From positions 1 to 64,000 of IMG/VR virus record IMGVR_UViG_3300042549_005931: a stretch of 64,000 nucleotides of DNA; one strand, 5' to 3'. Made by a program: the position numbers and the translations under genes. A model generated the notes under the pieces. It was not told the DNA's origin, searched no databases, and saw only the letters and a program-made list of their open reading frames with translations. Below, one piece after another: positions 1,901-53,966 of this stretch (positions within the stretch are counted from its first letter, which is position 1; each line of letters opens with the position of its first letter).

Positions 1901-3073
1901 TTAGTTTGATAATGGAGCTTTAATTTTTGGATGTGATTGATAATTCACCAACTCAAAACAATCGGGTCTATATGATAGTATTTTATCATTAAATGATTTT
2001 GGACCCAAATGTTCTTTTACTTTTTCATGCATATACCAATTTCTTTCCGTAATTGTAATAGCCGGTAAATCATATGGTTCTCTACTGATTTGTTCTTTTG
2101 CTTGTTCAATGTGGTTTTTATATAAATGCACATCTCCCAAATTACCAATCAAATCTTCAGGTATCATATTAACTTCTTTTGCTATAATCTCTAATAGTAA
2201 TGCATAAGATGCAATGTTAAATGGTAATCCTAAAAATGTATCTACTGAACGTTGATTCCACATTAATGATATGGTTCTTTTAGGGACAGGATATAATTTA
2301 TCAATTTCGTTATGGTCAACCACATGAAAATCAAAAGGGTCAAACACTTCATATTTTTTAGACGCCAAATCCAATCGTTCCTCTATACTCAGCTCTCTTG
2401 TATAAACTTGGAACCCGTAATGACATGGAGGTAAAACCATTTGGTCTAACTCTGCTACATTCCAAGCATTTACCATCAATCTTCTACTATCAGGATTTGT
2501 TTTTAGGTCATGTACTAATCGTAGTATTTGGTCATACCACAATGAACCTTTCTCATTCTTATCCATATCCATCCACCCTTGCCACTGTCTCCACTGCTTA
2601 CCATAGATTGGTCCTAAATCACCCCATTTCTTTGCAAACTCATTATCGGTTTTTATTTTGTTGATAAACTCTTTTTGTGTTAAAATTATGTAATCATCAC
2701 CATCTTCAGTTTCAATTTTAATCATTTCACCTCTTATGGTTTTGATAATAAAATCATCAATAGGATTCTCCAATTGAAAATCATTAGTGATTTTCTCATA
2801 GTTCTTATAAGTATCACCATCCCAAATGTGGCAATCGTAATCTAATAGGAATTTGATGTTAGTATCTCCTCTTAAAAACCATAAGAGTTCTGTTACAATG
2901 GAGTTCCAATGCATCTTCTTTGTGGTTAGTAATGGAAACCCCTGTGACATCTTATGACGAATCTGTCTACCAAATACTGATATCGTACCGGTACCTGTTC
3001 TATCATCCTTTTCAACTCCGTTATCTAAAATATCTTGTAGGAGTTCTTGGTACTTACTATCGATTGTATTCAT
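1901..3073 (-). CDS. thyA: Thymidylate synthase with insertions
   Basis: DRTGTGT, ELLWFLRG, LGPIYGKQWR, LPPCH (catalytic Cys), QRSVDTFLGLPFN, GDVHLY. Confidence 0.97.
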   Translation of the reverse strand: MNTIDSKYQELLQDILDNGVEKDDRTGTGTISVFGRQIRHKMSQGFPLLTTKKMHWNSIVTELLWFLRGDTNIKFLLDYDCHIWDGDTYKNYEKITNDFQLENPIDDFIIKTIRGEMIKIETEDGDDYIILTQKEFINKIKTDNEFAKKWGDLGPIYGKQWRQWQGWMDMDKNEKGSLWYDQILRLVHDLKTNPDSRRLMVNAWNVAELDQMVLPPCHYGFQVYTRELSIEERLDLASKKYEVFDPFDFHVVDHNEIDKLYPVPKRTISLMWNQRSVDTFLGLPFNIASYALLLEIIAKEVNMIPEDLIGNLGDVHLYKNHIEQAKEQISREPYDLPAITITERNWYMHEKVKEHLGPKSFNDKILSYRPDCFELVNYQSHPKIKAPLSN

Positions 3074-17823: not shown

Positions 17824-18927
17824 ATGAATATAACATTAGTATTGGCTGTTTACAATAACCTATCATTAACCAAAGAATGTTATAGACACATTCGTGGTTT
17901 GTATAATGATGCACCAATTGTTATTAGTAGTGGTGGGTCCGATGATGGTACATTCGAATGGTTAGAACAAACATCTGAGAATGATACACATTTTTCTTTT
18001 GTTCACGAATCTGAAAAGATAAACTTCTCGGAAAATTATAACCAAGGAATTAAACTTGTCGATACAGATAAGTTAGTTCTTATTCATAATGATATGGTTA
18101 TCGGTAAGGGTTTCTTAGAATCACTTGACAAACAACTAACTGAGAACATGTTATTATGTTACACCACTGTTGAACCACCAATCTTTAAAGGTCATAATAG
18201 ACCGGGTAAGTTCATATTGGATTGTGGAACATCATTCAATAACTTCAATATGAATTTGTTCAACCAATATATTGATAGTGTACCAAAAACTGGTAATCTA
18301 TATGATGGTGGTTCATTCTTTATGTCAGGATACAAATCATTATTTGAAGATGTAAACTATTTCGACGGGTTTAGTTTCTTTCCTTGTTTTTGTGAGGATG
18401 ATGACTTCTTAATAAGAACTAAACTTAAAGGTTACGACATCAAGACAACCGAAGAAGCAATAACGTATCATTTCGTTTCTAAGACCTCCAGATTTAGTGA
18501 TGAGTACAAAGACACCACAAAACAAAATGAACTCAACAGCAACCGAAATTTCATACGAAAATGGGGTATTCCATCTCATTTATTTACCATGATTAGGTAT
18601 TGGGAGGATGATGACTTCAAATATAAGAATTATGATATGGGTTTAACATTAGTAAACTCATCTCAATTAGAAATATTGGAACCATTTTTTGATAAGATAT
18701 CAATTGATAAGGTACCAGAAGATTACATAGTTTCCGAACAGAAAAAAACTAATTATGATTTAAGAAGTAAATTCACATTCATAGATAATGTTGATGTAAT
18801 GATTTACATTGATGGTAATATTTCTGAGATTGAGTTTGATGTTATTCAAAAACTAAGATTAAGTTTACCGGATTACGAACCGGGTATATACGAGAGTGGT
18901 AGATTAAAGATTGAGATTAAATCCTAA
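17824..18927 (+). CDS. GT2-like glycosyltransferase with C-terminal extension
   Basis: GSDDGT, IHNDM, CEDDDF, YHFVSKTSR. Confidence 0.85.
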   Translation: MNITLVLAVYNNLSLTKECYRHIRGLYNDAPIVISSGGSDDGTFEWLEQTSENDTHFSFVHESEKINFSENYNQGIKLVDTDKLVLIHNDMVIGKGFLESLDKQLTENMLLCYTTVEPPIFKGHNRPGKFILDCGTSFNNFNMNLFNQYIDSVPKTGNLYDGGSFFMSGYKSLFEDVNYFDGFSFFPCFCEDDDFLIRTKLKGYDIKTTEEAITYHFVSKTSRFSDEYKDTTKQNELNSNRNFIRKWGIPSHLFTMIRYWEDDDFKYKNYDMGLTLVNSSQLEILEPFFDKISIDKVPEDYIVSEQKKTNYDLRSKFTFIDNVDVMIYIDGNISEIEFDVIQKLRLSLPDYEPGIYESGRLKIEIKS

Positions 18928-19323
18928 TTTTTTAAATACGTTAATTGATTTTTTATTCCATTCATCAACGAATGATTTGACCGGTCCATTTGTGTGATTT
19001 TTAATCACAAGATATAACATATCTGTTGCACCGTAGTTTCTTTCACCGACATGTTGTTTAGAGAACACATTGTATATAACATCATCATCTAACCAGCAAT
19101 ACCCATAAATCTTTTTTTCATGATATGCAACAAAGAATTTATGACCATTTAAAATTCTGTCTTGTGCATCATCTAAATTAAACATTAAGTCCCAATTAAG
19201 TTCATTGTTAAACATCTTTATACAATGTTTAATAATTTGGTAGTCATATGTTTCTTGGATTTCAATTTCTTCTGATATATTTCTATCAATTAAATCATTT
19301 GAATTAAGAATATAATTAATCAT
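18904..19323 (-). CDS. GNAT-like acetyltransferase
   Basis: IYGYCW, YNVFS, VDEWNKKSINVFKKLGF (motif B N..S..F.KLGF). Confidence 0.65.
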   Translation of the reverse strand: MINYILNSNDLIDRNISEEIEIQETYDYQIIKHCIKMFNNELNWDLMFNLDDAQDRILNGHKFFVAYHEKKIYGYCWLDDDVIYNVFSKQHVGERNYGATDMLYLVIKNHTNGPVKSFVDEWNKKSINVFKKLGFNLNL

Positions 19324-20027
19324 ATTAATACGTTTCTTTTTTGGAATTGTTTTTCAAACTTATCCCAAACCCATTGTTTTAATTCATCATTTATCACAAT
19401 TTTACTACTTACTTTACTACTATGATTTAATTTTTCAATGTTTAGTCTTTCTCCAAACTGATTATAAATGAAATCTGAAAATTTATCAATTTCAGATATA
19501 TCAAATTCATAATCTGCCGGTTCATTTTCTTTAATCCAATTTTGAGATAGTAGAACCGATAATATACCATTATAATGTCTAACGACGAATCCATTAATAA
19601 GATGAATATCTTTTAGTTCTTTTTCTTTTATCAATCTTAAATGAATACTATCCCATTCAGAATTATCAGTAGAGTATAATGTATTCACAAACTCAAAATC
19701 AAATGTTTTAAAAATAAAATCATTATCAACATCTTCCCATTTTATAATTGGTGTGTATAATTTTGATTTTTCCGTTATATGAAAAAAATATTGTAGACCT
19801 GACAACCACTTATCAAACCAATCTCTTTTTATACAGATAGTTTTCCGTATTCCAAACTCTTCATATAATATAGATTTTTTAAAATGAGTATGTTCATTTG
19901 GGTATTCTAAATCCAAATCTAAACGTTTTATATTTAAATTTGAAGTTAATAAAGCTTTTTCTATTGAAACGGATGCACATCTTGGAATTGATAACCAAAT
20001 CAATTCATTATTTATCAGTAACCCCAT
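19320..20027 (-). CDS. Sulfotransferase-like protein
   Basis: LSIPRCASVSI resembles the 5'-PSB loop (HIPKxAxTS); KRDWFDKWLSG resembles the 3'-PB motif. Confidence 0.6.
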   Translation of the reverse strand: MGLLINNELIWLSIPRCASVSIEKALLTSNLNIKRLDLDLEYPNEHTHFKKSILYEEFGIRKTICIKRDWFDKWLSGLQYFFHITEKSKLYTPIIKWEDVDNDFIFKTFDFEFVNTLYSTDNSEWDSIHLRLIKEKELKDIHLINGFVVRHYNGILSVLLSQNWIKENEPADYEFDISEIDKFSDFIYNQFGERLNIEKLNHSSKVSSKIVINDELKQWVWDKFEKQFQKRNVLI

Positions 20028-20042
20028 TGAATAAATTTATAT

Positions 20043-20135
20043 TTACGAATTTTCAACAATAATTAAAGAGCCAATTGTTGCCATTGTTTCATTTAAAACT
20101 TGTATCTGTTCGTTTGTTAATTTTGTATATTCCAT
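20043..20135 (-). CDS. 30-aa ORF (MEYTKLTNEQIQVLNETMATIGSLIIVENS), not in ORF track
   Basis: Fills the gap between the Hint fusion and the sulfotransferase-like gene on the same strand; A-rich upstream. Confidence 0.55.
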   Translation of the reverse strand: MEYTKLTNEQIQVLNETMATIGSLIIVENS

Positions 20136-20154: not shown

Positions 20155-21663
20155 TTAGCAACCACCCGTACAATAACCATTATAACCCCCAAATTCGGTT
20201 GCATAGGTACCAATACATCTAAAACCTTTACCACAGGTGGCATTGTTACATTCGGAACATGGGTCATTATAATATCCACCACAAAAACAAGCTGAACCTT
20301 CACTGTTGTGTTCTATGGCAACATACGATGTTGTATTATTCTCATCCGATTTTGTTAAAAATAAATGTTGTCTTTCAACCGTTAATACCCACCCCTCAAA
20401 TATACTATGTGTTCTTTCTATTGTACTTACTATTTTTTGAACAAAAGATAATTCTGATGTTGAAGTATCGATTAACATAACAATGTCACCCGGTTTAAGA
20501 ATACCTATCCTAATAAATCTAATAACATCATCTCTTTCAACCAAATATCTTGATTCCGATACATCACTCCATGTACTACCATCTTGGAATCCTATTGTTA
20601 TAGAATTTGTTTTTCTGTGAATTCTAACCTTGTTAGTGATTTTATTTGTAGAATAGGTTGAACCCGTAATTAATTGGTTTATATCTATTTCATAATTTAC
20701 ATCTTCATCTATAACATCTACATTATTAGGGTTGGGTATGTCTATAGTTTTTAAATCGTCGCCAATTTCTAAATCTAACGCCGTTTTAAAACTACCATCG
20801 GCCATTTCAACTAAATCAGTATCTTCTAATTTTGGTGTCCAATCACTCTTAATTGTTGTTAAATAACGGGCTCTATCGCCTAAATAACTAAAATTAATTT
20901 CATCGTATTCTGGTTGTTCATCTATGGTATCAAAACATATTTTATGATATTGACCAATTTGTAATGATTCTAAATTGGGTGGAAATAATAAATTTAAACT
21001 TCTTACAACTTGTATATGGTTGTTATATAATTTATTAGAATTATAATAATATGGCATTAAAAAATATTCACCATTAACTTCATTAAGTATTGTATTTAAT
21101 TCTTCTTGAGTTGATACTTTAAATAATTTCGGGTATTGTGATTTATTATAATGTGGACCCGAAGTTTTTAGTATAAAATTTGGGTGGTTACCGTTATCAA
21201 GTATGTTTGTTATTGAATTTACCAAGGTACCATCACCTAAACGGTATGCAAATTCGGAACCAAATGATTGATTTTTTATTAGATTTAAAAAATTAACTTT
21301 ATTAGAACAATATTCATCATCAACAATCGCTGTTGTATCATACGCACTTCGTATAATTAATGTGGTATCATTATCTTCTATATATGGTATTGTTAATGAA
21401 CTATATACTGTATGCATATTACATTCAATATCTACAGATTTAGAAAGTTCATCATAAAAACCAGGTATAGCTCCAATGTATTCAATTTTAGTGAAACCGT
21501 TGTCACTGATAAATTGTAGTAAACTTGTTAGATTAAGTGATTCCTCATTTGATTCAATTCTTGTAGTAAGATTGTCCCATCCAACATTTGTATTGATTTC
21601 AATTGGGACTAAATCCCCATTTGAATTATACATAAAATCGCTACCAATTAAAACTGTCCTCAT
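20155..21663 (-). CDS. Circularly permuted ATP-grasp domain, Hint domain and Cys-rich C-terminal peptide fusion
   Basis: N-terminal GSDF..GDLVPIEINTNVG (D..ExN), PNFILK, YFLMPYY, VVRS; Hint from about K278 (LEDTDLVEMADGSFKTALDLEIGD) to WVLTVERQHLFL..AIEHN453; then a 49-aa, 8-Cys peptide. Confidence 0.75.
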   Translation of the reverse strand: MRTVLIGSDFMYNSNGDLVPIEINTNVGWDNLTTRIESNEESLNLTSLLQFISDNGFTKIEYIGAIPGFYDELSKSVDIECNMHTVYSSLTIPYIEDNDTTLIIRSAYDTTAIVDDEYCSNKVNFLNLIKNQSFGSEFAYRLGDGTLVNSITNILDNGNHPNFILKTSGPHYNKSQYPKLFKVSTQEELNTILNEVNGEYFLMPYYYNSNKLYNNHIQVVRSLNLLFPPNLESLQIGQYHKICFDTIDEQPEYDEINFSYLGDRARYLTTIKSDWTPKLEDTDLVEMADGSFKTALDLEIGDDLKTIDIPNPNNVDVIDEDVNYEIDINQLITGSTYSTNKITNKVRIHRKTNSITIGFQDGSTWSDVSESRYLVERDDVIRFIRIGILKPGDIVMLIDTSTSELSFVQKIVSTIERTHSIFEGWVLTVERQHLFLTKSDENNTTSYVAIEHNSEGSACFCGGYYNDPCSECNNATCGKGFRCIGTYATEFGGYNGYCTGGC

Positions 21664-21935
21664 TATATTATTGTTTTATTGTATTTTTTTGTGGACACAT
21701 CCACCTCGTCAACTTTATCCCAATGACCTAATCTACACGCACCTTTAATTGGTGAGAAAATTTTTTTACCGATTGGACATCCACACTCACCACATTTGGT
21801 TTCAAATAAATAAGAATTTCTTATCCAATCACATTTTAAACAAATCTCATGTCGCTTTAGTGCCAGTTCTTGTTCTTCTTCTGTTGGATTAGCCGCAGTT
21901 ACCCAAGATTTAAATATTTCAGTGGCCTTGTTCAT
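21663..21935 (-). CDS. Small Cys-rich, putative metal-binding protein
   Basis: RHEICLKC..KCGECGC..KIFSP..AC.LGHW pattern. Confidence 0.7.
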   Translation of the reverse strand: MNKATEIFKSWVTAANPTEEEQELALKRHEICLKCDWIRNSYLFETKCGECGCPIGKKIFSPIKGACRLGHWDKVDEVDVSTKKYNKTII

Positions 21936-28777: not shown

Positions 28778-29505
28778 GTTCTATTTTTTTCTATGTATAT
28801 GTGATTGTTATTACCTGTAAAATCAAATATTTTAAATTTAGTTAATTCTTTAAAATCATATAATCCCAATAAACCATATCTTTCTGAATTTACATATTCG
28901 TTATATTGATTTAAATTATTCACATAATCTGTTTTTATTAATTTAATTTCAGAATCTGTTAAATTATTTTTAGATAATAACAAATATTTGAAATCGATAC
29001 AATATGTTGGTTCATTATCGAATTTATCGTTACCTAACAAAATTTGTGGATTTTCATGTTGACTAAAAATGTTATCACCCACTTCAATCTCAAATATGAA
29101 CTCATAATCAATATAATATTTTATTTTTTTATCTTTTACTGAATAATTTACAGTGAATTCATAATTTTTATTGAATTCAAAATTAAAATTTAAACCTTTT
29201 CTTGTGATGTCTTCTTTATCGTTGATATTGAAAGAACAATTAGTAAAAAATAAATTGGAATAGATTGTTTGACCGTCCGAATCTTGGTAGGTGTGTGGAT
29301 TTATACCAATTGAAAAAATAAAGGGTACTTTCCAAAATATTGCAATTGGTTCATTAGTGTAATTCTCTTTTTTATCAACAGAAAATTCAACATGTACCGT
29401 AAAATCGTTATCATTAAAAACATTTTTACAAATTTCACCTTTTTCTAAGTTATATGTTTTTAATGATGGCCACAAAATTAATGTCTGGTCTTTTTCTACC
29501 CTCAT
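28774..29505 (-). CDS. Divergent LamG/ConA-like domain protein
   Basis: Beta-rich; ends LLGLYDF..IFDFTGNNNH like the LamG inserts in the neighbouring GT7s. Confidence 0.5.
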   Translation of the reverse strand: MRVEKDQTLILWPSLKTYNLEKGEICKNVFNDNDFTVHVEFSVDKKENYTNEPIAIFWKVPFIFSIGINPHTYQDSDGQTIYSNLFFTNCSFNINDKEDITRKGLNFNFEFNKNYEFTVNYSVKDKKIKYYIDYEFIFEIEVGDNIFSQHENPQILLGNDKFDNEPTYCIDFKYLLLSKNNLTDSEIKLIKTDYVNNLNQYNEYVNSERYGLLGLYDFKELTKFKIFDFTGNNNHIYIEKNRT

Positions 29506-30884
29506 ATTTTATTTTTTATTTTATGATAAAATTCTTCCATCTCGGGAAATGTTTTTAAAAAATTAGTACCTCTTCTTAAATCATGTTCATCAACAAATTT
29601 AACAAAATCAATTCGATTTTGGTTTAAATCTTCATCTTCGGATAATGACCAATCATATATTCTTTTAATTTTTTGAACTTCAATATCATTAAATCCCATA
29701 GTATTACCGTCATAATTTTCAACTGAATTGTACACCACAAATTCTGCTTGTTTTCTTATCAATTCTTTATGTTCCGGTTCTAATATTTTAACTGTCTGAT
29801 GTGGTGGGTATCTTAAATAAGATGCATCGACCGGTGCCGTTGTTAACCAATATCTATGAAAATTTTTGTGTTGTTTTCTTAAATCCAATACATTCTTTAA
29901 AAAAGTCCTAAAAGAAAAAACACTTAATGCGTTATATGTTGTCATAAACACAATAGTCACTTTTGGTACTTTTTCTAAAATCTTATTTACATTGTCCCAA
30001 AAACTATTAAATTCTAATCCATGTCTAATATATTCGGCCTGTGCTCCCCACCCATCTAATGATGTGTATATTATCATTTCGTTTACCAAATCTTTATCGG
30101 TAATAATTTGTAATTTTTGAATTAATCTATCAATTAAATTGTTAGGTACACCTAAATTTGAATTTATGGATAAGTTTAACTTAGTATTTGGGGATGGATG
30201 TTCTATAATATAATCCAATACGTTCCAAGTATCTTTACTTAATAATGGTTCCCCACCAGTTATCCTAAATGTATGTAAATCTTTATATAAATCCGGCCAC
30301 CAATCCCAAAATGCCTCCACATATGGATTATGTTCAGAATGTTTATATGGCATTTTACCTCCGGATTTAATCCAACTTAATTCACCAAAATCGTTGGATG
30401 TTGGGTATTTTCCATATCTTTCAATCTCTTCCATCCATTTAGATGAAAACATTGGTCCGCAATATGAACATTTAAAATTACAAGTATTTGAAAAAGATAC
30501 TTCCACGTATTTTGGATTATAGTTTTCCCTCCAACTTAAATTTTTAATTTCATCAAAATATTGTTGTGACCATGGTTCTTCGGATTTAAAAACTCTATCT
30601 GATAACATATCTGAATTATCCTCAACATCCCAACAGTACTTACATTCTTTTGGTCTTTCACCATTTAACATTTGTTTTCTTGCTTCTTTTTTTTCCTTAG
30701 TGTTATGTAAGGCGGTAGGATTCCTTGATAATTCAGATAGTGGTATTTTATGTGGTGTTGGATGATGACACGAATGTGTTAATCCATTATGTAAATGCAT
30801 AGTAACTTGTGTCCATTTAGCCAAACAAAATCCACACCCAACAGAGTCTAACTTATTTTTTATTTGATTATGAACATCACTCAT
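29502..30884 (-). CDS. Radical SAM protein with an N-terminal Cys-rich (twitch/SPASM-like) region
   Basis: CNFKCSYC, ITGGEPLL, N-terminal CLAKW..SCHH..ECKYCW. Confidence 0.9.
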   Translation of the reverse strand: MSDVHNQIKNKLDSVGCGFCLAKWTQVTMHLHNGLTHSCHHPTPHKIPLSELSRNPTALHNTKEKKEARKQMLNGERPKECKYCWDVEDNSDMLSDRVFKSEEPWSQQYFDEIKNLSWRENYNPKYVEVSFSNTCNFKCSYCGPMFSSKWMEEIERYGKYPTSNDFGELSWIKSGGKMPYKHSEHNPYVEAFWDWWPDLYKDLHTFRITGGEPLLSKDTWNVLDYIIEHPSPNTKLNLSINSNLGVPNNLIDRLIQKLQIITDKDLVNEMIIYTSLDGWGAQAEYIRHGLEFNSFWDNVNKILEKVPKVTIVFMTTYNALSVFSFRTFLKNVLDLRKQHKNFHRYWLTTAPVDASYLRYPPHQTVKILEPEHKELIRKQAEFVVYNSVENYDGNTMGFNDIEVQKIKRIYDWSLSEDEDLNQNRIDFVKFVDEHDLRRGTNFLKTFPEMEEFYHKIKNKI

Positions 30885-32251
30885 AGTTCTACATTTATAA
30901 TTTTAGTGTTATTGTTGTAATATACGTCTTTTAAGTTATATTTTAAACTATTCATCCCATCATTTTTATAGTTGATTTTCCCTTGTTGCATCTCTGTAAC
31001 AAATCTTCTTTCGTTCTTTGCCGTTGTCTCACCTTTGGCCCATTTACCATTAACAAATCCTTCATCAATGTGTGGTAAACATTCAAACTTTCCTTCTCGT
31101 CTAAATGGTAGAACATCTTTCATTACTTTAATATTTTCTTTACCGGAAATTACATTATTATACACCACACCTTCAAATTTTTCTGATGAATTAAAATGTA
31201 AAATTGGTGATTCATGTATCTCATCAATTGAGGTGTCATAAATTTTAACTTCAGATATCTTACCCTTAAATCTTGTATTGGTGTGATTACAGAAACCAAG
31301 TAAGAATGGTTTAATTGAATCGTGTAACCTTAATTTAGTGGTTAATATTCTTGGCGTATTGTATTTTGCACCCATGTAATTTAAAATCAAATCATCGTTA
31401 ACATACATACTATATTCGTCAGTATCTTTCTTATATGAAACAGTAAACCATGTCCAAAGATTCTCAAATCGTTTTGACCACGTATAGTAATGGTTGTTCG
31501 ACCTATCAATAACCATTGAATTAACCGTTCTTGAATTATTAAACGATAAACCCCAAGTCCAACTACCATCTTTTCTTAATAATGGGTACTCAATAAATTT
31601 TCTTTCGGTATCTCCAACCAACCAAATGGGTACTTTATCTTGCTGTTGTTCTGCGGTGAATAAAATTGATATGGTATGGTCATTGTGTAAACAAGAACTG
31701 ATTTCTCTATTGGTTGGTATTTCAATATGTGAATCGATACCATTAAATTCATAATAATCTTTGTCCTCATATTGATTAACCACTTCACCGGTTGTGTATC
31801 CTTCGTAATAACATCTCCAAAACAAATCATCGTCCTCTTGACCCCAATCCCAATATTCATTTGAATAACCATTAGTTCTTTCTACCTGTTCTTTGGTGAA
31901 CAAAATAACACCACCAAAATACTGGTCATAGTTTATACCATAATCATATTTTGATAGTTGTGTTGCTATATGAATAGGGTTATTTTCAGGATATGAATAG
32001 TCAACATTTTCATCCGGTATCATATCAACATCATGCCAGGCAATATAGTCACATCCGTCATTGAACGCATATTGTGCGGCAATGTTTTTCATCGCACCCC
32101 TATTAAATAGTTTATCATCAACTTGATGTCCAACATAAAATTCATGGTCGATACCTTTACCGGTTAATAGTTTACCAAGTTTATCAACAAGTTCATCTAA
32201 ATGATTTTTTCTGTCTCTGTACGGTATACAAATACCTAATTTATGACTCAT
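30881..32251 (-). CDS. GT7 (beta-1,4-galactosyltransferase-like) with inserted LamG domain
   Basis: IPYRDR, FNRGAMKN, HDVD, YFGGV, NGYSNEYWDWGQEDDD, LamG insert, C-terminal DGMNSLKY. Confidence 0.88.
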   Translation of the reverse strand: MSHKLGICIPYRDRKNHLDELVDKLGKLLTGKGIDHEFYVGHQVDDKLFNRGAMKNIAAQYAFNDGCDYIAWHDVDMIPDENVDYSYPENNPIHIATQLSKYDYGINYDQYFGGVILFTKEQVERTNGYSNEYWDWGQEDDDLFWRCYYEGYTTGEVVNQYEDKDYYEFNGIDSHIEIPTNREISSCLHNDHTISILFTAEQQQDKVPIWLVGDTERKFIEYPLLRKDGSWTWGLSFNNSRTVNSMVIDRSNNHYYTWSKRFENLWTWFTVSYKKDTDEYSMYVNDDLILNYMGAKYNTPRILTTKLRLHDSIKPFLLGFCNHTNTRFKGKISEVKIYDTSIDEIHESPILHFNSSEKFEGVVYNNVISGKENIKVMKDVLPFRREGKFECLPHIDEGFVNGKWAKGETTAKNERRFVTEMQQGKINYKNDGMNSLKYNLKDVYYNNNTKIINVEL

Positions 32252-33672
32252 ATTCCTACATTAATTTCTGTTATTTTTTTATCTTTTGTTTTACCATATT
32301 CGATAAACTCTAATGTATTTAACCCATCTTCATTAGTTAAATCGGTATTAATTGATATTTCATTGTGGTATCTTAACTGATTCCATCTTGTCGATTGGTC
32401 TTTCCATTTATTATCCAAAAATCCATTTTCATTATGCTTTAAAGATTTAAAAAGTGATTTTCTTCTATATGGTATTTTCACTTCTTTATATTCTGGTAAA
32501 TTTAAATTAACAATTTCACATTTTTCTATTTGTCCATTATTTTTATTACCCGAAAGGTCAATTAATTGGTAATTTTTAATAAAATTTGCATTATAATAAA
32601 TTTTTAAATCAGATGGTGACCTATGTATATTAAAATTTTCAGTTAATAACCCGGTTCTATTAATTGATATTTCTTCAACTTCTTTTTCGGTTAATGCAAT
32701 GTCATAATAGGCAAATTCATCAATATGACCCCTAAAATAATTAGGTATTAATTCTCTATCGGGTTTACCCACACCCAAATAAAAATATGGTTCCGTTCTA
32801 TAAGACCTTAGTTTTTTAAAATGTTCTGTTTGACCTATAAAAATACCGTCTTGATATACTTTTAAGGTTTTTTCAAACATGTCTAACACAATCACTATGT
32901 TAGTTTTATAGTTTGTTTTAATATTTGAATTGACGTAAAGTGCATTGTTAAAATTATCAAACGCACAAAAATTGTATCTTGAAAATGAATTATAACAAAC
33001 GGCAAAATCCCATCCTGGAATACTAAAAACGGTAAACTCGTCAGATTCTTTTTCATGATTTAATATTAAATTTTCAGGTAAAAACGAAATGAATATCGTG
33101 GCATTTGAATTAATATTAATCGTGTTATTACATTTTATTAATGAATCTATACCGTTAAACTTTAATGCCTTAGTTTTAATATTAAAATTTTTTAATTTTA
33201 ACGTGTTTAGATTAACATCATTTTTTCTACATCTCAATAATAAATCATCATCCTCAAACCCCCACGCCCAATACTTGTTTGAGTACCCGTTAATTTTTTT
33301 AAATGTCTCAACAGGGAACATAGTCACACCACCAAAATACTCATCAAATAACTCTCTCGTCTTCCCATTCTCGTCGGGTAAGAAATCGGTTGCAAGGTGT
33401 AACGGTACTTCAGAATATGAATAATCAACATCAATAGGTAACATATCCACATCGTGAAAAACAACGTAGTCACATTCCATTTTTAGTGCGTAATTAAACC
33501 CTATGTTTAATAACATACCTCTATTGAATTGTTTTGCATTATCTTGATTGACTATAATTAATTCATACCGAATATTACGTCCATCTAAATAATCGGTGAT
33601 ATGTTTTTTAAATAAATCTAAATGCTCAAATCTATCTCTATAAGGGACAATTACACCTAATTTTTTATCCAT
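32248..33672 (-). CDS. GT7 (beta-1,4-galactosyltransferase-like) with inserted LamG domain
   Basis: VPYRDR, FNRGMLLNIG, FHDVD, YFGGV, NGYSNKYWAWGFEDDD, ALKFNG..FRGHIDEFAYYDIAL, C-terminal DGLNTL. Confidence 0.9.
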   Translation of the reverse strand: MDKKLGVIVPYRDRFEHLDLFKKHITDYLDGRNIRYELIIVNQDNAKQFNRGMLLNIGFNYALKMECDYVVFHDVDMLPIDVDYSYSEVPLHLATDFLPDENGKTRELFDEYFGGVTMFPVETFKKINGYSNKYWAWGFEDDDLLLRCRKNDVNLNTLKLKNFNIKTKALKFNGIDSLIKCNNTININSNATIFISFLPENLILNHEKESDEFTVFSIPGWDFAVCYNSFSRYNFCAFDNFNNALYVNSNIKTNYKTNIVIVLDMFEKTLKVYQDGIFIGQTEHFKKLRSYRTEPYFYLGVGKPDRELIPNYFRGHIDEFAYYDIALTEKEVEEISINRTGLLTENFNIHRSPSDLKIYYNANFIKNYQLIDLSGNKNNGQIEKCEIVNLNLPEYKEVKIPYRRKSLFKSLKHNENGFLDNKWKDQSTRWNQLRYHNEISINTDLTNEDGLNTLEFIEYGKTKDKKITEINVGI

Positions 33673-36197: not shown

Positions 36198-36653
36198 TTA
36201 GACTTTTTTAACAAGTTCATTATCCATAATAGTCTCAATTGTTTCATAAACTGTTCTGTTTGTGGTGTCTATATCAATAAAATTATCTGTTGGTTCTTGA
36301 TAATTTTCAACATGAAATTGTTCTCTACCCCTAATATCTGAGGTGTGAACAAATATTTCAACTACATTTTCTTTTAATTCTTTTTTAAAATTATCCCTCA
36401 AATCTTTAAACGGTGACACTATTGACATGACAACATTTTTACCATCATTAAACGAAAGTTTTGCCATGTTTTGTGCAAGTTCAATATTTGTTCTTCTCCC
36501 ATTTTCAGAATAATCTTTGTTTTGTGTTAAATTACGCAAGTCGTCACCGTCAATGTGATGTACGTTTGTCAATTTATGTTCACACAGATATTTTGCTAAT
36601 GTTGTTTTACCGGCACCAGGTTGTCCAATAAAATAAAAAATCTTCTTACTCAT
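36198..36653 (-). CDS. cysC: Adenylyl-sulfate (APS) kinase, compact form
   Basis: GQPGAGKTT P-loop, IDGDDLR, YSENGRRTNI, SPFKDLR, YQEP. Confidence 0.85.
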   Translation of the reverse strand: MSKKIFYFIGQPGAGKTTLAKYLCEHKLTNVHHIDGDDLRNLTQNKDYSENGRRTNIELAQNMAKLSFNDGKNVVMSIVSPFKDLRDNFKKELKENVVEIFVHTSDIRGREQFHVENYQEPTDNFIDIDTTNRTVYETIETIMDNELVKKV

Positions 36654-45687: not shown

Positions 45688-47310
45688 TTATTTCAAATAT
45701 ATTAAAAAATCTGCGTGGTCTTGTAATATTTTTAAATTTAATAACATATTTCTTTTAAATTTCTCATCGAAAGTAAAAAAATGTTCTCTACGAACGTCAC
45801 TATTAGTGGCTCCATAAAGTTCAAACGCTCTTTCTCTATTAAATAAATGTAACCCATTAGTTATCGCATAAAAACTAGATACATCATACGCGTCATTAAT
45901 TGTTTTTATAAATTTACGTTCCGGCATAGTAATAGAACATTGTTCTAAGTATTTTTCTATGTTTTCTGTAATTTTATTTTTATCTCTAAATGTTTTCCAA
46001 AATTCAGAATCACTACGTTTTGTTAAATAATGTAGGTAAATAAAATCTTTAGTATCATCGTGAAATTTGTTCACTCTCTCATTATATCTATTAATATAAA
46101 ACTCATTGTTTGAAATAGCACCTAAATTATTGGAGATATACTCATTTAATGATGTAGTGATTGTCCAAATTGATGTTGCTTCTAACGGTTCGATAAAACC
46201 GGAAGACAAACCAATAGCTATACAGTTTTTAATCCACGTTTGTTTGTATCGTCCGGCATCATATGTAAATGGATTACCAAATTCGATATCGTTTCCAAAT
46301 CGTTCTTTGATTTCTTCCTTTGCTTGTTCATCTGAAATAAAATCTGAATCAAACACATAACCACAACCAAATCTACCTTCAACCGGTATCTTCCACATCC
46401 ATCCATATTTTAAAGCAATTGATTCTGTATATGGTGGTACATCATTACTTTCATTAGGGATTACAAATGGGATTGCTCGTTTCATTGGTAAACTATCTGA
46501 ATATGATTCCCATTCACCCTTAAAATGTTTACCGATAATTAATCTATTGAACCCACTACAATCAAACACAAAATTACAAGGTAATTTATCACCCCGTTTA
46601 GTTGTAATTTCTTTTATAGAACCATCATTTTCATTACTTATAATTTCATTGAGTTCGGATTCAACATACCTAACTCCACGGTACATAGCATTCTTTTTTA
46701 AAAACTTGGCCAATAATCTAGCGTCAAAATGCATACCAAAACTAGATAATGAATTAAAATGTGTAATTGGGTTTTGGTCTTTATTATCTATATTTACAGA
46801 TGGAATAAAGTTAACTAAATTTCTTTTTGATGCATTAGCACTAAATGAAATATCATCCAATGATTCTCCTTTAGCAATTGAATTTAAAACTAAAGTAGAA
46901 ATCCCACCACCATTTGTTGCATCATTAGTTTCGAATGAATTTACATTTGTGTTTTCAAAAAATGGGTGAAAATATGACGTATCATCACCATTCCAATCGG
47001 TAAATTTAATACCACTTTTGATTGTTCCTTTCGCATATTTTACAATATCTGAAACGGAAATTCCTACACTGTCCATAAAATGAACAAAATGTGGTGTTGT
47101 TCCTTCACCAGCACCTAAAATACCAATTTCAGCACTTGCCAATACGGTAATATTAATCCATGGATAGTTTTTCTTTAAAAATAAAGCAGTCATCCATCCG
47201 GCAGTTCCACCACCTACAATGACAAAATTGAATTTATTTTCTATAACCTTGTCTAACGATTGGTCCATAGGGCCAATAGGACCGATTGGTCCAATTTGTT
47301 CTTCTTCCAT
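45688..47310 (-). CDS. Flavin-dependent halogenase (tryptophan-halogenase family)
   Basis: GGGTAGW, GAGEGT, TIKSGIKF (catalytic Lys position), DCSGF, GWMWKIP, FIEPLEATSI. Confidence 0.9.
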   Translation of the reverse strand: MEEEQIGPIGPIGPMDQSLDKVIENKFNFVIVGGGTAGWMTALFLKKNYPWINITVLASAEIGILGAGEGTTPHFVHFMDSVGISVSDIVKYAKGTIKSGIKFTDWNGDDTSYFHPFFENTNVNSFETNDATNGGGISTLVLNSIAKGESLDDISFSANASKRNLVNFIPSVNIDNKDQNPITHFNSLSSFGMHFDARLLAKFLKKNAMYRGVRYVESELNEIISNENDGSIKEITTKRGDKLPCNFVFDCSGFNRLIIGKHFKGEWESYSDSLPMKRAIPFVIPNESNDVPPYTESIALKYGWMWKIPVEGRFGCGYVFDSDFISDEQAKEEIKERFGNDIEFGNPFTYDAGRYKQTWIKNCIAIGLSSGFIEPLEATSIWTITTSLNEYISNNLGAISNNEFYINRYNERVNKFHDDTKDFIYLHYLTKRSDSEFWKTFRDKNKITENIEKYLEQCSITMPERKFIKTINDAYDVSSFYAITNGLHLFNRERAFELYGATNSDVRREHFFTFDEKFKRNMLLNLKILQDHADFLIYLK

Positions 47311-48909: not shown

Positions 48910-50445
48910 TTATTGAACATTTTTTATCATCTCAATTAATTTTTTATTATCTATTGATGTTTTCATTGCTTGTTCTACGTTATATCTATATGTTTCCATC
49001 CACATCGAAAAATCACCATCTAATAGGTACGTTTCATTTTCTTTTTTAAATGTTTCTTTTGGTATTAAAGTTTCACAAAGCCCAACACCGACCTCAATAT
49101 AACTAATAATTGGGAATGTATCAACTTTATTTCTATCAAAAATGTTGGGTGTACGTTCTTTCCATGTTTTTAATTTTTTTTCTAATGTTTTAGGTATGAT
49201 TGTACGTTCTTTATACTCTTTCCAAAATGGAGTATCATTTCTTTCAGTTAAATAATGGTAATATAAAAAATCTAAAACACTATCATTAAAATTGTTGAAA
49301 TACTCATTATATTCTTCTCTAAATAAATCAGAGGGATGTGTAAAGTTCATTTTGGTAAGATATGTTAATTGAGATATGGCAATCCATATTGATGTGGCCT
49401 CAATTGGTTCTGTAAATCCCGCACTTAAACCAACAGATATACAATTTTTAACCCACACATCTTTAAATCTACCCGCATTAAAATCAATTACTTTATTAAT
49501 CTTAATTTCTTTACCAACCATTTCTTCCACTTCTTTCTTAGCTTCATCTACACTGATATAATTTTTATCAAAAATATAACCGCAACCATATCTACTTTGT
49601 AAAGGTATTTTCCACATCCAACCATATTTCATGGCAATTGCATCTGTATGTGGTTGTATAATGTCATCTTCTTTATCTAAAAAGAATGGTATCGCACAAT
49701 TGACTTTAAGTTGATTCTCATATGAAATCCACTCACTTTCATAATGCTTACCTATAATTAATCTTTTAAACCCACTACAATCAAAAACAAAATCAATATT
49801 AGATACTGTTATATCCTCAGTTAAGTTGATTGAACATATATTTCCGTTTTTATCATTTTGAATATCTTTTACAGTACCTTCAATTCTTTTTATACCTCTT
49901 TCTTCAGCCTTTTTTCTTAAAAATTTTGCCATTAAAGAAGCATCAAAATGATATGAATAACTTACAACTTTTTTAAATGTGTCATCGATATATAGATAAG
50001 GAGATTTATTATTATATGATAATAAATGAGTGATTAATGTGTTATCTAAATTTTCGTCGTTTGCAATTAAATTTGTAATGGTATAATTTGTTGCGTTAGG
50101 TGTTAAACCAACTGAAATAACATTTCCAGATTTAACAATCTCTTCAAAATTTAATGATTTATCTTCCACACTGAAACCATGCATATATTTTGTACCATCA
50201 CCTCTCCAATTTTCAAAATTAATTCCTAATTTAAATGTGGCATCCGTTTCTTTAATTATTTCTTCTTCACTTATACCCAAGTTATATAGAAAATATGGGA
50301 ATATCGGTACAGAACCTTCACCAGCACCCAAAATACCTATTTCCTCACTTTCAATAAGTGTGATATTATAATCAGGTGCAATTTTGTTTAAATAAAGAGC
50401 GGTTAACCAACCTGCAGTACCACCACCTACTATTACTAATTTCAT
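48910..50445 (-). CDS. Flavin-dependent halogenase (tryptophan-halogenase family)
   Basis: GGGTAGW, GAGEGS, TFKLGINF (catalytic Lys position), DCSGF, GWMWKIP, FTEPIEATSI. Confidence 0.9.
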   Translation of the reverse strand: MKLVIVGGGTAGWLTALYLNKIAPDYNITLIESEEIGILGAGEGSVPIFPYFLYNLGISEEEIIKETDATFKLGINFENWRGDGTKYMHGFSVEDKSLNFEEIVKSGNVISVGLTPNATNYTITNLIANDENLDNTLITHLLSYNNKSPYLYIDDTFKKVVSYSYHFDASLMAKFLRKKAEERGIKRIEGTVKDIQNDKNGNICSINLTEDITVSNIDFVFDCSGFKRLIIGKHYESEWISYENQLKVNCAIPFFLDKEDDIIQPHTDAIAMKYGWMWKIPLQSRYGCGYIFDKNYISVDEAKKEVEEMVGKEIKINKVIDFNAGRFKDVWVKNCISVGLSAGFTEPIEATSIWIAISQLTYLTKMNFTHPSDLFREEYNEYFNNFNDSVLDFLYYHYLTERNDTPFWKEYKERTIIPKTLEKKLKTWKERTPNIFDRNKVDTFPIISYIEVGVGLCETLIPKETFKKENETYLLDGDFSMWMETYRYNVEQAMKTSIDNKKLIEMIKNVQ

Positions 50446-50837: not shown

Positions 50838-53800
50838 TTAATCTAAACCTACGTGTTTTTTAATTTTATTTACTTCTTCGGTTAATTCTTTAATTGCCTC
50901 AATTAACAATGGTACAATTTTATCATATTTTACCGTTAAATAGTTTTCACCTGATTTTGATTCCGTTTTCCCATCATCCGTTGTTCCAAAGTCAAACGGC
51001 GCCAAAGTGACAACTTCAGGTAGTACAGATTGTATTTCTTGTGCCGAAACTCCGACTTGTAATTTAGAATCGTTATAACCAAAACTTTTGGCCAAATCAT
51101 TATTAACATAATAGAAACCATTTAATTTGGATACTTTATCCAATGGATTTTCTATCGGTCCTAAATTTTCTTTTAATCTTTCATCTGAATAATACGCAGT
51201 AATATCACTTGTTGCAGCAATTTGATTGGGAACATAAAACGCTTTACCATTATAAACCCTAACCCACGTATTATCTTCCATAAAGATACCACCACCATAT
51301 GTTCCACTAAACCATCCCGAACTACCTTGACTTCTAAACCAGTTTGGTGTATAAACCGTATCAAATGTTGGACCATTGTTGGTATTAACATATTGGTTCA
51401 TGGCAGACGCATAAACGTTTGATGTACCTGAAGGACCTGTTGGCCCTTGAGGACCTGTGTTACCATTAGTACCATTAGTACCTGAAGGTCCTTGTCTACC
51501 TTGTGGACCTACGGGACCTATTGGACCTATCGGTCCTTGTGGACCTGCTCCACCAACGTTACCTGTTGGACCTGTATTTCCTTGATTACCCTGTGGACCA
51601 GCTGGCCCTGTGTTACCTATATTACCCTGTGGACCTACGGGACCTATTGGACCTTGTGGTCCCGTATTTCCATTATTACCCGCAGGTCCTGTATTTCCTT
51701 GATTACCTTGAGGACCAATGTTACCTTGTGGTCCCGTATTTCCATTATTACCCGCAGGTCCTGTATTTCCTTGATTACCTTGTGGCCCGATGTTACCATT
51801 GTTACCAGCAGGTCCCGTATTTCCTTGGTTACCTTGGGGTCCTATGTTACCATTTGTTCCGTTATTACCTGAAGGACCTTGTCTACCTTGCGGACCTACG
51901 GGTCCAATTGGTCCTATATTACCTTGTGGACCTATGTTACCCTGAGGTCCAATTGGTCCAGTGTTTCCTTGATTTCCTTGAGGTCCTGTAGCACCATTGT
52001 TACCATTGTTACCTGCAGGTCCTGTGTTACCTTGATTACCTTGAGGGCCTGTTGGTCCTGTGTTACCCTGATTACCCTGAGCACCATTATTACCATTATT
52101 ACCTGAAGGACCTTGTCTACCTTGAGGGCCTACGGGACCAATTTGGCCAGTATTTCCTTGATTACCCTGTGGACCAGTTGGACCTGTATTTCCTTGGTTA
52201 CCTTGAGCACCGTTGTTACCATTATTACCTGATGGTCCTTGTCTACCTTGAGGGCCTACGGGACCAATTGGGCCAGTATTTCCTTGATTACCTTGAGGAC
52301 CGGTTGGACCTGTATTTCCCTGATTACCTTGTGGGCCAGTTGCACCCGTATTTCCTTGATTACCCTGTGGGCCAGTTGCACCCGTATTTCCTTGATTACC
52401 CTGTGGGCCAGTTGCACCCGTATTTCCTTGATTACCCTGTGGACCTGTAGCACCCGTATTTCCTTGGTTACCTTGGGGTCCTGTTGGTCCTGTATTTCCT
52501 TGGTTACCTTGAGCACCGTTGTTACCATTATTACCTGATGGTCCTTGTCTACCTTGTGGACCGACAGGTCCGATTGGGCCAGTATTTCCCTGATTACCTT
52601 GTGGACCTGTCGGTCCTGTATTTCCTTGGTTACCTTGAGGACCTGTTGGTCCAACATTACCTTGAGAACCCACGTTACCCTGAGCACCAGTATTTCCTTG
52701 ATTTCCTTGTGGACCTAAGTTACCAAATGCACCTTGATTTCCTTGCGGACCTGTTAGTCCTGTATTTCCTTGGTTACCCTGAGGACCTGTTGGTCCGACA
52801 TTACCTTGCGGACCTGTGGCTCCTTGATTACCTTGTGTACCCACATTACCTTGAGGACCAAGATTACCAAACGCACCTTGATTTCCTTGCGGGCCTGTTG
52901 GTCCTGTATTTCCTTGGTTACCCTGAGGACCAGTTGGTCCAACATTACCTTGAGGCCCACTATTTCCTTGATTACCTTGCGGTCCTGATGGACCTGTGTT
53001 TCCTATTGGACCTGTGTTACCCTGATTACCTTGAGGACCTGTTGGTCCTGTGTTACCCTGATTACCTTGTGGACCAGTTGGTCCTGTGTTTCCTTGATTT
53101 CCTTGTGGTCCTATAACACCCTGAGGGCCCGTTGGTCCTTGTGGTCCTGATACATTTGAAGAACCACCAGCAGGACCGGTAGCTCCTTGATTACCTTGAA
53201 AACCTTGAGGACCGGTTGGTCCTGTACCACCTTGATTTCCTTGAAAACCTTGAGGACCAACATTACCATTTAAACCATTATTACCTGCAGGTCCTGTGTT
53301 TCCTTGGTTACCTTGAGGACCGGTTGGTCCTGTTACACCTGTGTTACCCTGATTTCCTTGTGGACCAGTTGGTCCCACGTTACCTTGGGGACCAGTAGCA
53401 CCTTGATTGCCTTGAGTTCCCGCAGGTCCTGTGTTACCTTGATTACCCTGAGGTCCGGTTAAACCAGTATTACCTTGATTACCTTGTGGACCAGTTGGTC
53501 CAACATTACCTTGTGGGCCGACATTTCCTTGATTTCCTTGTGGTCCTGTTAAACCAGTATTTCCTTGATTACCTTGAGCACCTGTTGCACCCACATTACC
53601 CTGATTACCTTGTGGGCCTGTTGGTCCCACGTTACCTTGGGGTCCTGTTGGTCCTTGTGGACCACCCACTAATAAATTTGTGGCAACACCTGCAGCAGTT
53701 TCAGTTAAATCAATATACGCACCTCGAGCGGAACCTCCTTGTTCAAAAATTCTTATTTTATTTTGGTAAGAGTCGATTGTTATACCACTACCTGTAAGTG

Positions 53801-53966
53801 TGGTATTTGTCTCAGGTTTACCTAATAATAATTCTCCACCTTCGTCACCCCCAATTGCGTCTAGTGTTAATTTTCCACCAGCACCACCACCAACCGATAA
53901 AGAACCGGTAATTACAGAATTATTTTTAGCAATGACACCATTGCGTGCCACAAATTCATTTGCCAT
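50838..53966 (-). CDS. Collagen-like fibre protein with C-terminal intramolecular chaperone (peptidase S74)
   Basis: About 250 G-X-Y triplets; WFRSQG..W....YGGGIFM.D.TWVR head motif; YSDERLKEN..GVSAQE..PEVV..YDKIVPLLIEAIKEL. Confidence 0.92.
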   Translation of the reverse strand: MANEFVARNGVIAKNNSVITGSLSVGGGAGGKLTLDAIGGDEGGELLLGKPETNTTLTGSGITIDSYQNKIRIFEQGGSARGAYIDLTETAAGVATNLLVGGPQGPTGPQGNVGPTGPQGNQGNVGATGAQGNQGNTGLTGPQGNQGNVGPQGNVGPTGPQGNQGNTGLTGPQGNQGNTGPAGTQGNQGATGPQGNVGPTGPQGNQGNTGVTGPTGPQGNQGNTGPAGNNGLNGNVGPQGFQGNQGGTGPTGPQGFQGNQGATGPAGGSSNVSGPQGPTGPQGVIGPQGNQGNTGPTGPQGNQGNTGPTGPQGNQGNTGPIGNTGPSGPQGNQGNSGPQGNVGPTGPQGNQGNTGPTGPQGNQGAFGNLGPQGNVGTQGNQGATGPQGNVGPTGPQGNQGNTGLTGPQGNQGAFGNLGPQGNQGNTGAQGNVGSQGNVGPTGPQGNQGNTGPTGPQGNQGNTGPIGPVGPQGRQGPSGNNGNNGAQGNQGNTGPTGPQGNQGNTGATGPQGNQGNTGATGPQGNQGNTGATGPQGNQGNTGATGPQGNQGNTGPTGPQGNQGNTGPIGPVGPQGRQGPSGNNGNNGAQGNQGNTGPTGPQGNQGNTGQIGPVGPQGRQGPSGNNGNNGAQGNQGNTGPTGPQGNQGNTGPAGNNGNNGATGPQGNQGNTGPIGPQGNIGPQGNIGPIGPVGPQGRQGPSGNNGTNGNIGPQGNQGNTGPAGNNGNIGPQGNQGNTGPAGNNGNTGPQGNIGPQGNQGNTGPAGNNGNTGPQGPIGPVGPQGNIGNTGPAGPQGNQGNTGPTGNVGGAGPQGPIGPIGPVGPQGRQGPSGTNGTNGNTGPQGPTGPSGTSNVYASAMNQYVNTNNGPTFDTVYTPNWFRSQGSSGWFSGTYGGGIFMEDNTWVRVYNGKAFYVPNQIAATSDITAYYSDERLKENLGPIENPLDKVSKLNGFYYVNNDLAKSFGYNDSKLQVGVSAQEIQSVLPEVVTLAPFDFGTTDDGKTESKSGENYLTVKYDKIVPLLIEAIKELTEEVNKIKKHVGLD
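51424..53664 (-). repeat. Collagen G-X-Y coding repeat (dominant 36-bp unit encoding GPQGNQGNTGPT/GAT)
   Basis: 9/36-bp periodicity with synonymous variation; one interruption (GGSSNVS) near 53150-53170. Confidence 0.95.

Follow-up and report, generated by a model that had tools for sequence, protein, structure and literature searches.

What becomes of a short, cysteine-rich tail that begins at the very residue where a Hint domain ends? This question is raised by a predicted gene, P0001, in a 64,000-nucleotide stretch of DNA (hereafter the window), which comprises the first 64 kb of the 269-kb IMG/VR virus record IMGVR_UViG_3300042549_005931, and for which near-identical DNA is present in lake and other freshwater metagenomes. 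Hint domains have established roles in protein splicing (inteins) and lipid-linked signaling (hedgehog), and a predicted one in toxin release. The product of P0001 appears to be a three-part phage protein, made of an ATP-grasp-type carrier, a Hint domain and a cargo, in which the Hint domain would release the tail as a free, disulfide-knotted and fast-evolving binding peptide, a reading to which we assign a probability of roughly 0.6. A preliminary description of the window had proposed a released peptide of 49 residues, with eight Cys and five Tyr, ending in TGGC, and translation of positions 20155-21663 on the minus strand returned exactly that string. That description did not mention the N-terminal ATP-grasp-like domain, the invariant tail Lys or the two small, near-universal partner genes, which are reported here. 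The features of the gene are as follows:

20155-21663, minus strand: whole open reading frame (ORF) P0001, 502 amino acids plus stop codon (20155-20157), with ATP-grasp-like, Hint and Cys-rich parts; 771 homologues in a homologous-protein search, and 358 clusters at 50% identity in an exhaustive profile search
20158-20304, minus strand: Cys-rich tail, 49 amino acids, residues 454-502 (translation, standalone model, alignments)
20227-20229, minus strand: codon of Lys479 in a C-x-K motif, the only conserved tail residue other than Cys and Gly (alignments)
20305-20310, minus strand: codons of His452-Asn453, predicted site of Asn cyclization with scissile bond Asn453|Ser454 (invariant, 119/119)
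20305-20841, minus strand: Hint (intein/BIL/hedgehog) fold, residues 275-453, keeping only the residues of C-terminal cleavage (Foldseek, VIA-align, hhalign)
20830-20832, minus strand: codon of Lys278 at the intein Cys1 position, hence no N-terminal nucleophile (invariant)
20845-21663, minus strand: putative circularly permuted ATP-grasp-like ligase domain, residues 1-273 (AlphaFold2 confidence about 90, structural matches, conserved residues)

The Hint domain and its C-terminal junction

The full-length structure was predicted with AlphaFold2 from 119 homologues, at a mean predicted local distance difference test (pLDDT) score of 85. Foldseek matched the Hint part to bacterial intein-like (BIL), intein and hedgehog structures at probability 1.0 (E about 1e-6), and VIA-align returned a Z-score of 14.8 to both the C. 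thermocellum BIL domain and the NpuDnaB intein. In alignments with full-length inteins, the match begins at, or a few residues ahead of, residue 278 (intein position 1) and stops at Asn453; as had been proposed, the tail directly follows His452-Asn453, the pair that the fold searches align to the terminal His-Asn (HN) of inteins and BIL domains. In some relatives there is a second, canonical Hint domain that matches Pfam Intein_splicing above its cut-off, and hhalign against these domains (probability 96.8%, E 3e-10) paired Lys278 with Cys1, Ser371 with the block-B His, His433 with the block-F His, and His452-Asn453 with the terminal His-Asn.

Conservation of these positions is uneven. Across 119 sequences, His452 and Asn453 are present in all 119, His433 in 111, and Lys278 is invariant; HN closes the Hint domain in 202 of the 204 family members with an alignment reaching that far, as well as in 57/57 sequences of an independent IMG/VR set, and is followed by a residue without preference (L, V, A, S, F, Y, G and others). 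In inteins, three residues catalyze Asn cyclization (the terminal Asn, the penultimate His and the His of block F), the N-terminal acyl shift is driven by Cys1 and the block-B His, and type A BIL domains undergo C-terminal cleavage in the absence of a +1 nucleophile (PMC4031507). The present domain has kept the residues of C-terminal cleavage but has neither Cys1 nor the block-B His, and can therefore perform no reaction other than C-terminal cleavage; formation of an N-terminal thioester is impossible, and splicing is ruled out by Lys278 at position 1, Ser371 at block B and the unconserved +1 residue. For the same reasons, and since no conserved extein follows HN, a splicing intein lodged in a host gene was rejected. 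We predict that the Hint is likely a cleavage-only domain, in which Asn453 would cyclize, aided by His452 and His433, and cut the Asn453|Ser454 bond. A precursor of about 56.8 kDa would then yield a carrier fragment of about 51.8 kDa and a peptide of about 5.06 kDa (5,060.5 Da, or 5,052.4 Da with four disulfides), the N-terminus of which would be free.

The cysteine-rich tail and its exchange

The composition of the tail differs sharply from the rest of the protein with respect to Cys (8/49 versus 3/453, Fisher p = 6e-7) and Gly (11/49 versus 22/453, p = 1e-4), as the preliminary description had noted, whereas the Tyr contrast it also listed is non-significant for this single protein (5/49 versus 23/453, p = 0.18) and emerges only family-wide, where tails contain 10.9% Tyr and bodies 5.0%. 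Its Cys residues follow the framework C-x-C...C-x2-C...C-G-K-x3-C...C-x3-C, and alignment of the C-termini of homologues for Cys spacing and variability revealed that the even-Cys framework is fixed and the remainder hypervariable. The number of Cys is even in 176/178 tails, and in 57/57 of a second set, ranging from 4 to 12 and mostly 6, 8 or 10 (39-47 tails with six and 22-23 with ten, among about 180-190). At least one Lys is present in every short tail (178/178, when about 44 would lack Lys by chance, and 57/57 in the second set), the sequences behind these Cys and Lys counts being related and therefore not independent trials. The majority of short tails hold exactly one Lys, usually as C-x-K (157/190 and 51/57). 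No Tyr position is conserved, Trp taking its place in other subfamilies, and Asp-Tyr stands just past the predicted cut site in many tails.

When modeled alone with 40 homologues of the same framework, the tail reached a pLDDT of 87.6 and formed three strands (residues 5-8, 28-35 and 41-47); it lies outside the Hint fold and folds autonomously in the model. VIA-align listed 16 matches at Z >= 2 (maximum 3.1), mostly cystine-knot or similar disulfide-rich mini-proteins (e.g. MCh-1, mu-agatoxin, PA1b, tachystatins, amaranth amylase inhibitor, spider toxins and tick RaCI). Comparison of the model with the PDB and AlphaFold DB clusters returned nothing significant (Foldseek E >= 0.87), the tail profile found no matches among PDB sequences, and an ESM Atlas feature search with the tail alone gave no usable matches. 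The released peptide would be expected to self-fold into a three-stranded, four-disulfide, knottin-like scaffold.

Homologues all derive from metagenomes or viral contigs, and the family was met in phage contigs only. Among 50,697 deposited phage genomes, neither tblastn nor megablast found a match, a scan of 185,579 prokaryote species genomes found no relatives, and neither Pfam nor PHROGs, queried with the whole protein and with its three parts, returned anything at E up to 10 beyond chance-level matches. An Ataxin-1 AXH match, the sole result of the whole-protein profile against PDB sequences, was likewise dismissed as chance. Within this family the tail is the region that changes most: alignment columns of the body average 1.4 bits of entropy, and non-Cys columns of the tail 2.9 bits, and the ratio of nonsynonymous to synonymous substitution rates (dN/dS) is 0.31-0.64 in the tail versus 0.09-0.39 in the two body domains (ATP-grasp 0.09-0.24), the tail being the top region in each pair compared. 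Tail identity trails body identity at all levels of divergence; among pairs with 80-90% body identity the tails average 61%, and 21 of 224 such pairs differ in the number of Cys. Loops rich in Gly, Tyr, Ser and Asn, evolving several times faster than the remaining protein, would be in keeping with a binding module under diversifying pressure. Metagenome contigs mapped on the gene for population variation were short, mixed and uninformative. In a separate 211-kb record, IMGVR_UViG_3300042892_005961, two ATP-grasp-Hint-tail genes lie about 38 kb apart (loci L024 and L078), so some genomes hold paralogous cargo variants; in the genome studied here, neither a second tail copy nor a canonical Hint domain was found.

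What follows HN can also be exchanged as a unit. In all homologues that were inspected, HN is followed by a tail or by other cargo, so that the two refuting conditions of the preliminary description, a tail packed into the Hint fold or missing from most homologues, both fail; four arrangements occur. In 178/204 the cargo is a short Cys-rich tail; in at least six relatives a Cys-rich segment is followed by a Peptidase_S74 domain (P0056 at 27.6 bits and P0193 at 25.7 bits, cut-off 22); in at least one relative a Cys-rich segment is followed by a canonical, Cys1-bearing Hint domain that ends the protein (39.7 bits, cut-off 35.8), where the spacer between Hint domains may be only 3-7 residues long; and in 19 relatives the cargo is long (150-1240 amino acids), one such relative carrying BACON domains and adjoining a tail-sheath gene. 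The second and third arrangements place a self-cleaving domain on either side of the Cys-rich segment, which would be excised at both ends. Of the indirect arguments for release of the segment, this is the strongest. The suggestion that the tail is an exchangeable effector, as in pretoxin-Hint proteins, is borne out in that it is the variable and exchangeable part of a conserved protein, but nothing here suggests a toxin. Four relatives (P0269, P0278, P0191 and P0283) carry tandem Hint domains with spacers of 2-7 residues, or a second Hint right after the first HN, with a Cys-rich tail behind, and their Hint units look like shuffled cassettes.

Several points weigh against release of a knotted peptide. 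Cleavage is something that we infer from sequence and models. The cytoplasm in which the protein is synthesized is reducing and an export signal is not evident, leaving the site of disulfide formation unexplained. Within the full-length model the tail has a pLDDT of only 56-64; its similarity to knottins is weak, a lead rather than membership, with a knotted connectivity (I-IV, II-V, III-VI) that is putative at most, and the fold evidence for the N-terminal domain is borderline. To our knowledge, no natural Hint domain without Cys1 has been shown to cleave. A few relatives have almost no cargo past HN, so that the ATP-grasp-Hint body could be functional by itself, and Peptidase_S74 could serve trimerization instead of excision. 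Many inteins, in addition, cyclize Asn slowly unless the N-terminal steps precede, so that C-terminal cleavage depends on those earlier steps (PMC4031507).

This dependence on earlier steps, the loss of Cys1 and the block-B His, by which the Hint is no normal intein, and the indirect case for processing would all suit an alternative that we consider unlikely, namely that the tail is never cut, the Hint being a degenerate spacer and the tail a permanent C-terminal knob that, for example, anchors or targets the ligase to a surface or substrate. A purely structural Hint, however, would have no reason to keep His433, His452 and Asn453 while everything beyond them changes, and a knob of this kind does not sit well with extra self-cleaving domains behind the tail of relatives, or with cargo being swapped precisely at the HN boundary.

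A different fate for the Cys residues is that they bind metal (Zn or Fe-S) in the infected cell, the tail then being a small zinc-knuckle-type domain, for which the C-x-C, C-x2-C and C-x3-C pairs and the same reducing, export-free setting would speak. We regard this as improbable: tails with 6 and 10 Cys are common and misfit Cys4 sites, His is absent from 163/190 tails, and the best structural look-alikes are disulfide knots rather than zinc ribbons. Disulfides fit better than metal because Cys counts are even, including 6 and 10, and His is nearly absent. The proposal that the segment resembles a disulfide-knotted or metal-binding mini-protein therefore stands as to a separate Cys-rich mini-protein with weak knot look-alikes, and not as to metal.

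The invariant Lys invites yet another function, that of a released, substrate-like serine-protease inhibitor with this Lys as P1. The sole conserved residue other than Cys lies right after Cys-Gly/Pro/Ser in a short loop between Cys residues, in the C-x-K form found in most tails, and the fold is knottin-like; squash-family knottins present Cys-Pro-Lys/Arg in a similar way. In the Q-H-N subfamily, however, the Lys lies past the last Cys, near the C-terminus and outside any loop, and no protease target is known. We hold the inhibitor to be a very improbable candidate.

The N-terminal domain and the neighboring genes

All non-Hint structural matches of the full-length model in VIA-align, at ranks 28-47, fall on residues 1-273 and are ATP-grasp ligases, including glutathione, glutathionylspermidine and trypanothione synthetases, YgiC, Cp1B, LysX/ArgX and TTLL, with a best Z of 7.9, which is the caution limit of the tool; ATP-grasp Pfam families had no sequence match to these residues. 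Cp1B is the E-64 ligase (PMC12568646). The order of elements is permuted, with Asp9 and Glu22-x-Asn24 at the extreme N-terminus, and Asp9 is conserved at >= 90%, whereas Glu22, Asn24, Arg105, Lys122 and Lys166 are invariant. Asp9 and Glu22-x-Asn24, separated by 12 residues, we take to be a putative Mg-binding triad, with the invariant basic residues as candidates for phosphate binding, on the basis of their spacing and of the analogy with D-Ala-D-Ala ligase rather than of a superposition. Residues 1-273 are best described as a borderline candidate for an ATP-grasp-like ligase fold.

Genes flanking the module were compared across 80 IMG/VR loci with 4-kb flanks, all on the same strand. Relevant features in the window are:

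19320-20027, minus strand: sulfotransferase-like protein P0122, 235 amino acids (63/80 loci)
20043-20135, minus strand: micro-ORF P0124, 30 amino acids, with near-invariant C-terminal ...IG-x-LI-x3-N-S (79/80 loci)
21663-21935, minus strand: Cys-rich zinc-ribbon-like protein P0123, 90 amino acids, C-x2-C ... C-x2-C-G-C-P ... K ... C ... W (79/80 loci)
36198-36653, minus strand: adenosine 5'-phosphosulfate (APS) kinase (33/80 related loci have one no more than 4 kb from the module)
45688-47310 and 48910-50445, minus strand: two paralogous tryptophan-halogenase-like genes (phrog_2928, E about 1e-107 to 1e-111)

The micro-ORF, of a size often missed by gene callers, spans 24-30 amino acids across loci and, in the window, separates the main gene from the sulfotransferase-like one; it is conserved far beyond the adjoining hypervariable tail. 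The stop codon of P0123 overlaps the start codon of the main ORF, and this 90-residue protein is also found at the loci of relatives with long cargo. Co-folding of the full protein with P0123 scored 0.01, to which we attach no weight either way. P0122 carries the N-terminal motif I-P-R-C-A-S-V-S and resembles ESM Atlas clusters with Sulfotransfer_1/2 (feature scores 0.95-0.97, template modeling scores 0.51-0.57); P0122 itself had no Pfam match at E up to 10, and its homologue at locus L009 gave a faint match to Sulfotransfer_2. Downstream of it, a 139-residue ORF (18904-19323, minus strand) has weak similarity to GNAT acetyltransferases (E 0.03) and recurs in the closer related loci L002, L003, L006 and L007.

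The preliminary description had regarded the tail Tyr residues as plausible sites for an adjacent sulfotransferase-like enzyme or for halogenases. The former is indeed a conserved neighbor, but the latter are not adjacent: the halogenase-like genes flank a 331-residue ORF, adjoin a gene for a 1042-residue collagen-like tail fiber (50838-53966) and, like the tail-fiber genes, lie 25-30 kb from the main gene. Their distance of about 25 kb and their position beside tail-fiber genes rule them out as adjacent modifiers. APS kinase would supply 3'-phosphoadenosine 5'-phosphosulfate to a sulfotransferase, and with this gene nearby and Asp-Tyr just past the predicted cut site of many tails, sulfation of tail Tyr by P0122 is possible; against it, no Tyr is conserved, and P0122 could equally act on sugars, the region being rich in glycan-modifying genes. 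The invariant Lys, the fused ligase, the adjacent micro-ORF, the Cys-rich protein and the sulfotransferase-like gene may together reflect modification or ligation of the peptide, before or after its release.

Around the module extends a large cluster of glycan-modification genes (glycosyltransferases, an aminotransferase, methyltransferases, a carbamoyltransferase and a UDP-glucose dehydrogenase). Two tandem paralogues at 30881-33672 (minus strand) combine a eukaryote-type galactosyltransferase (Glyco_transf_7N/7C) with a lectin-like Laminin_G_3 domain, and a radical-SAM protein is encoded beside them (29502-30884). Elsewhere in the window, a 390-residue thymidylate-synthase homologue (1901-3073, minus strand) matches about 280 profile positions of phrog_160, plus a second partial match, suggesting an insertion of roughly 100 residues. 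As to what the released peptide might bind, the residues that make up its loops (Gly, Tyr, Ser, Asn, Trp), the BACON-type cargo of a relative, and the glycan and tail-fiber neighborhood point to possible surface or carbohydrate recognition.

A more elaborate proposal, which we hold to be rather doubtful, is that the four linked genes (P0124, P0123, P0001 and P0122) constitute a new kind of phage system for peptide maturation or conjugation, in which the Hint would unmask the knottin and the ATP-grasp domain would join a carboxylate to its invariant Lys or its new N-terminus, using ATP. The carboxylate might come from the conserved C-terminus of the micro-protein, from that of the knottin itself (giving a macrocycle), or from a component of the virion or the host surface, and in the Hint-peptide-Hint relatives a thioester could be the activating step; the product would be a hypervariable, covalently tagged or cyclized binding peptide, possibly Tyr-sulfated. 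That the tail is instead a polymorphic-toxin-type effector, an antimicrobial or toxic peptide freed at lysis and matched by an immunity gene, is very improbable in our view despite the pretoxin-like layout of a Hint with a variable C-terminal module and the antimicrobial or insecticidal nature of several knottin look-alikes, since no secretion or trafficking domain or immunity-like gene was noticed beside the tail (no search was aimed at either), the adjacent genes are conserved rather than co-variable, Pfam gave no PF07591 match for residues 270-460 at E up to 10, and BACON cargo adjoining a tail-sheath gene favors binding over toxicity.

Comparison with known systems

Returning to a Hint that frees a hypervariable peptide, confirmation of the cleavage would establish a natural source of knottin-type peptides in bacteria or phages, the first of its kind and one without a protease, and would add a new layer of phage-host or phage-environment interaction under diversifying pressure, as well as a self-releasing scaffold for the display or production of disulfide-rich peptides. 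The close association of the peptide with a ligase domain, a micro-protein and a sulfotransferase-like gene may further point to a peptide-modification pathway not described so far. The family, with at least 358 clusters at 50% identity, occurs commonly in metagenomes from lakes, and the very different tail versions of hundreds of related phages suggest an undescribed phage system for variable small peptides. Release of a variable C-terminal module by a Hint domain is known already, from polymorphic-toxin predictions and from BIL domains. A literature search on ATP-grasp with Hint in phages, Cys-rich proteins with Hint in cyanophages, and C-terminal cleavage by phage BIL domains did not yield a description of this architecture; the absence of a family model or paper suggests that the combination is new, i.e. 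a ligase-like carrier, a Hint domain without Cys1, a knottin-like hypervariable cargo and fixed partners, met in phages only.

The pretoxin-HINT domain (PF07591) of polymorphic toxins likewise stands right before a variable, exchangeable C-terminal module with predicted autoproteolytic release, and PF07591 is present in some ESM Atlas clusters of phage proteins with a similar shape. Here, in contrast, an N-terminal ligase-like enzyme takes the place of a secretion or filament domain, and the cargo is usually a Cys-rich mini-protein of 30-60 amino acids. Type A BIL domains provide the best structural matches (C. thermocellum 2lwy, and Tetrahymena BUBL BIL2 6tmm/6y75; Z 14.7-14.8), and share a C-terminal His-Asn without a +1 nucleophile, cleavage as the main outcome and residence in hypervariable proteins (PMC4031507). 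The Hint-peptide-Hint order of certain relatives mirrors the BIL-Ubl-BIL layout. Type A BIL domains, however, keep an N-terminal Cys, whereas the present Hint has an invariant Lys at that position and Ser for the block-B His, and fusion to an ATP-grasp domain is not a BIL feature.

ATP-grasp ligases and the associated ribosomally synthesized and post-translationally modified peptides (e.g. graspetides/microviridins, LysX-LysW, glutathione and glutathionylspermidine synthetases) place a fold that activates a peptide carboxylate, and to which residues 1-273 may be related, beside a hypervariable peptide with anchor residues and small partners, but here enzyme and peptide are one polypeptide, joined by a putatively self-cleaving domain. 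The Thr/Ser/Lys-Asp/Glu pairs typical of graspetides are not conserved in the tails, where only the Cys, one Lys and some Gly are conserved and Asp/Glu are sparse. The Peptidase_S74 chaperone of phage tail fibers and endosialidases sits directly behind the Cys-rich segment in some relatives (including P0056 and P0193); it is absent from P0001, and is normally C-terminal to long trimeric fibers rather than to a mini-protein. With knottins such as MCh-1, mu-agatoxin, PA1b, the tachystatins and the amaranth amylase inhibitor, finally, the tail shares its size, a three-stranded sheet, 6-8 Cys and hypervariable loops on a Cys scaffold; sequence similarity was not found, and Z is only 2-3.1. Known knottins are secreted, and mature from signal-peptide precursors through separate proteases, whereas the tail of P0001 would be freed by a Hint domain inside a bacterium.

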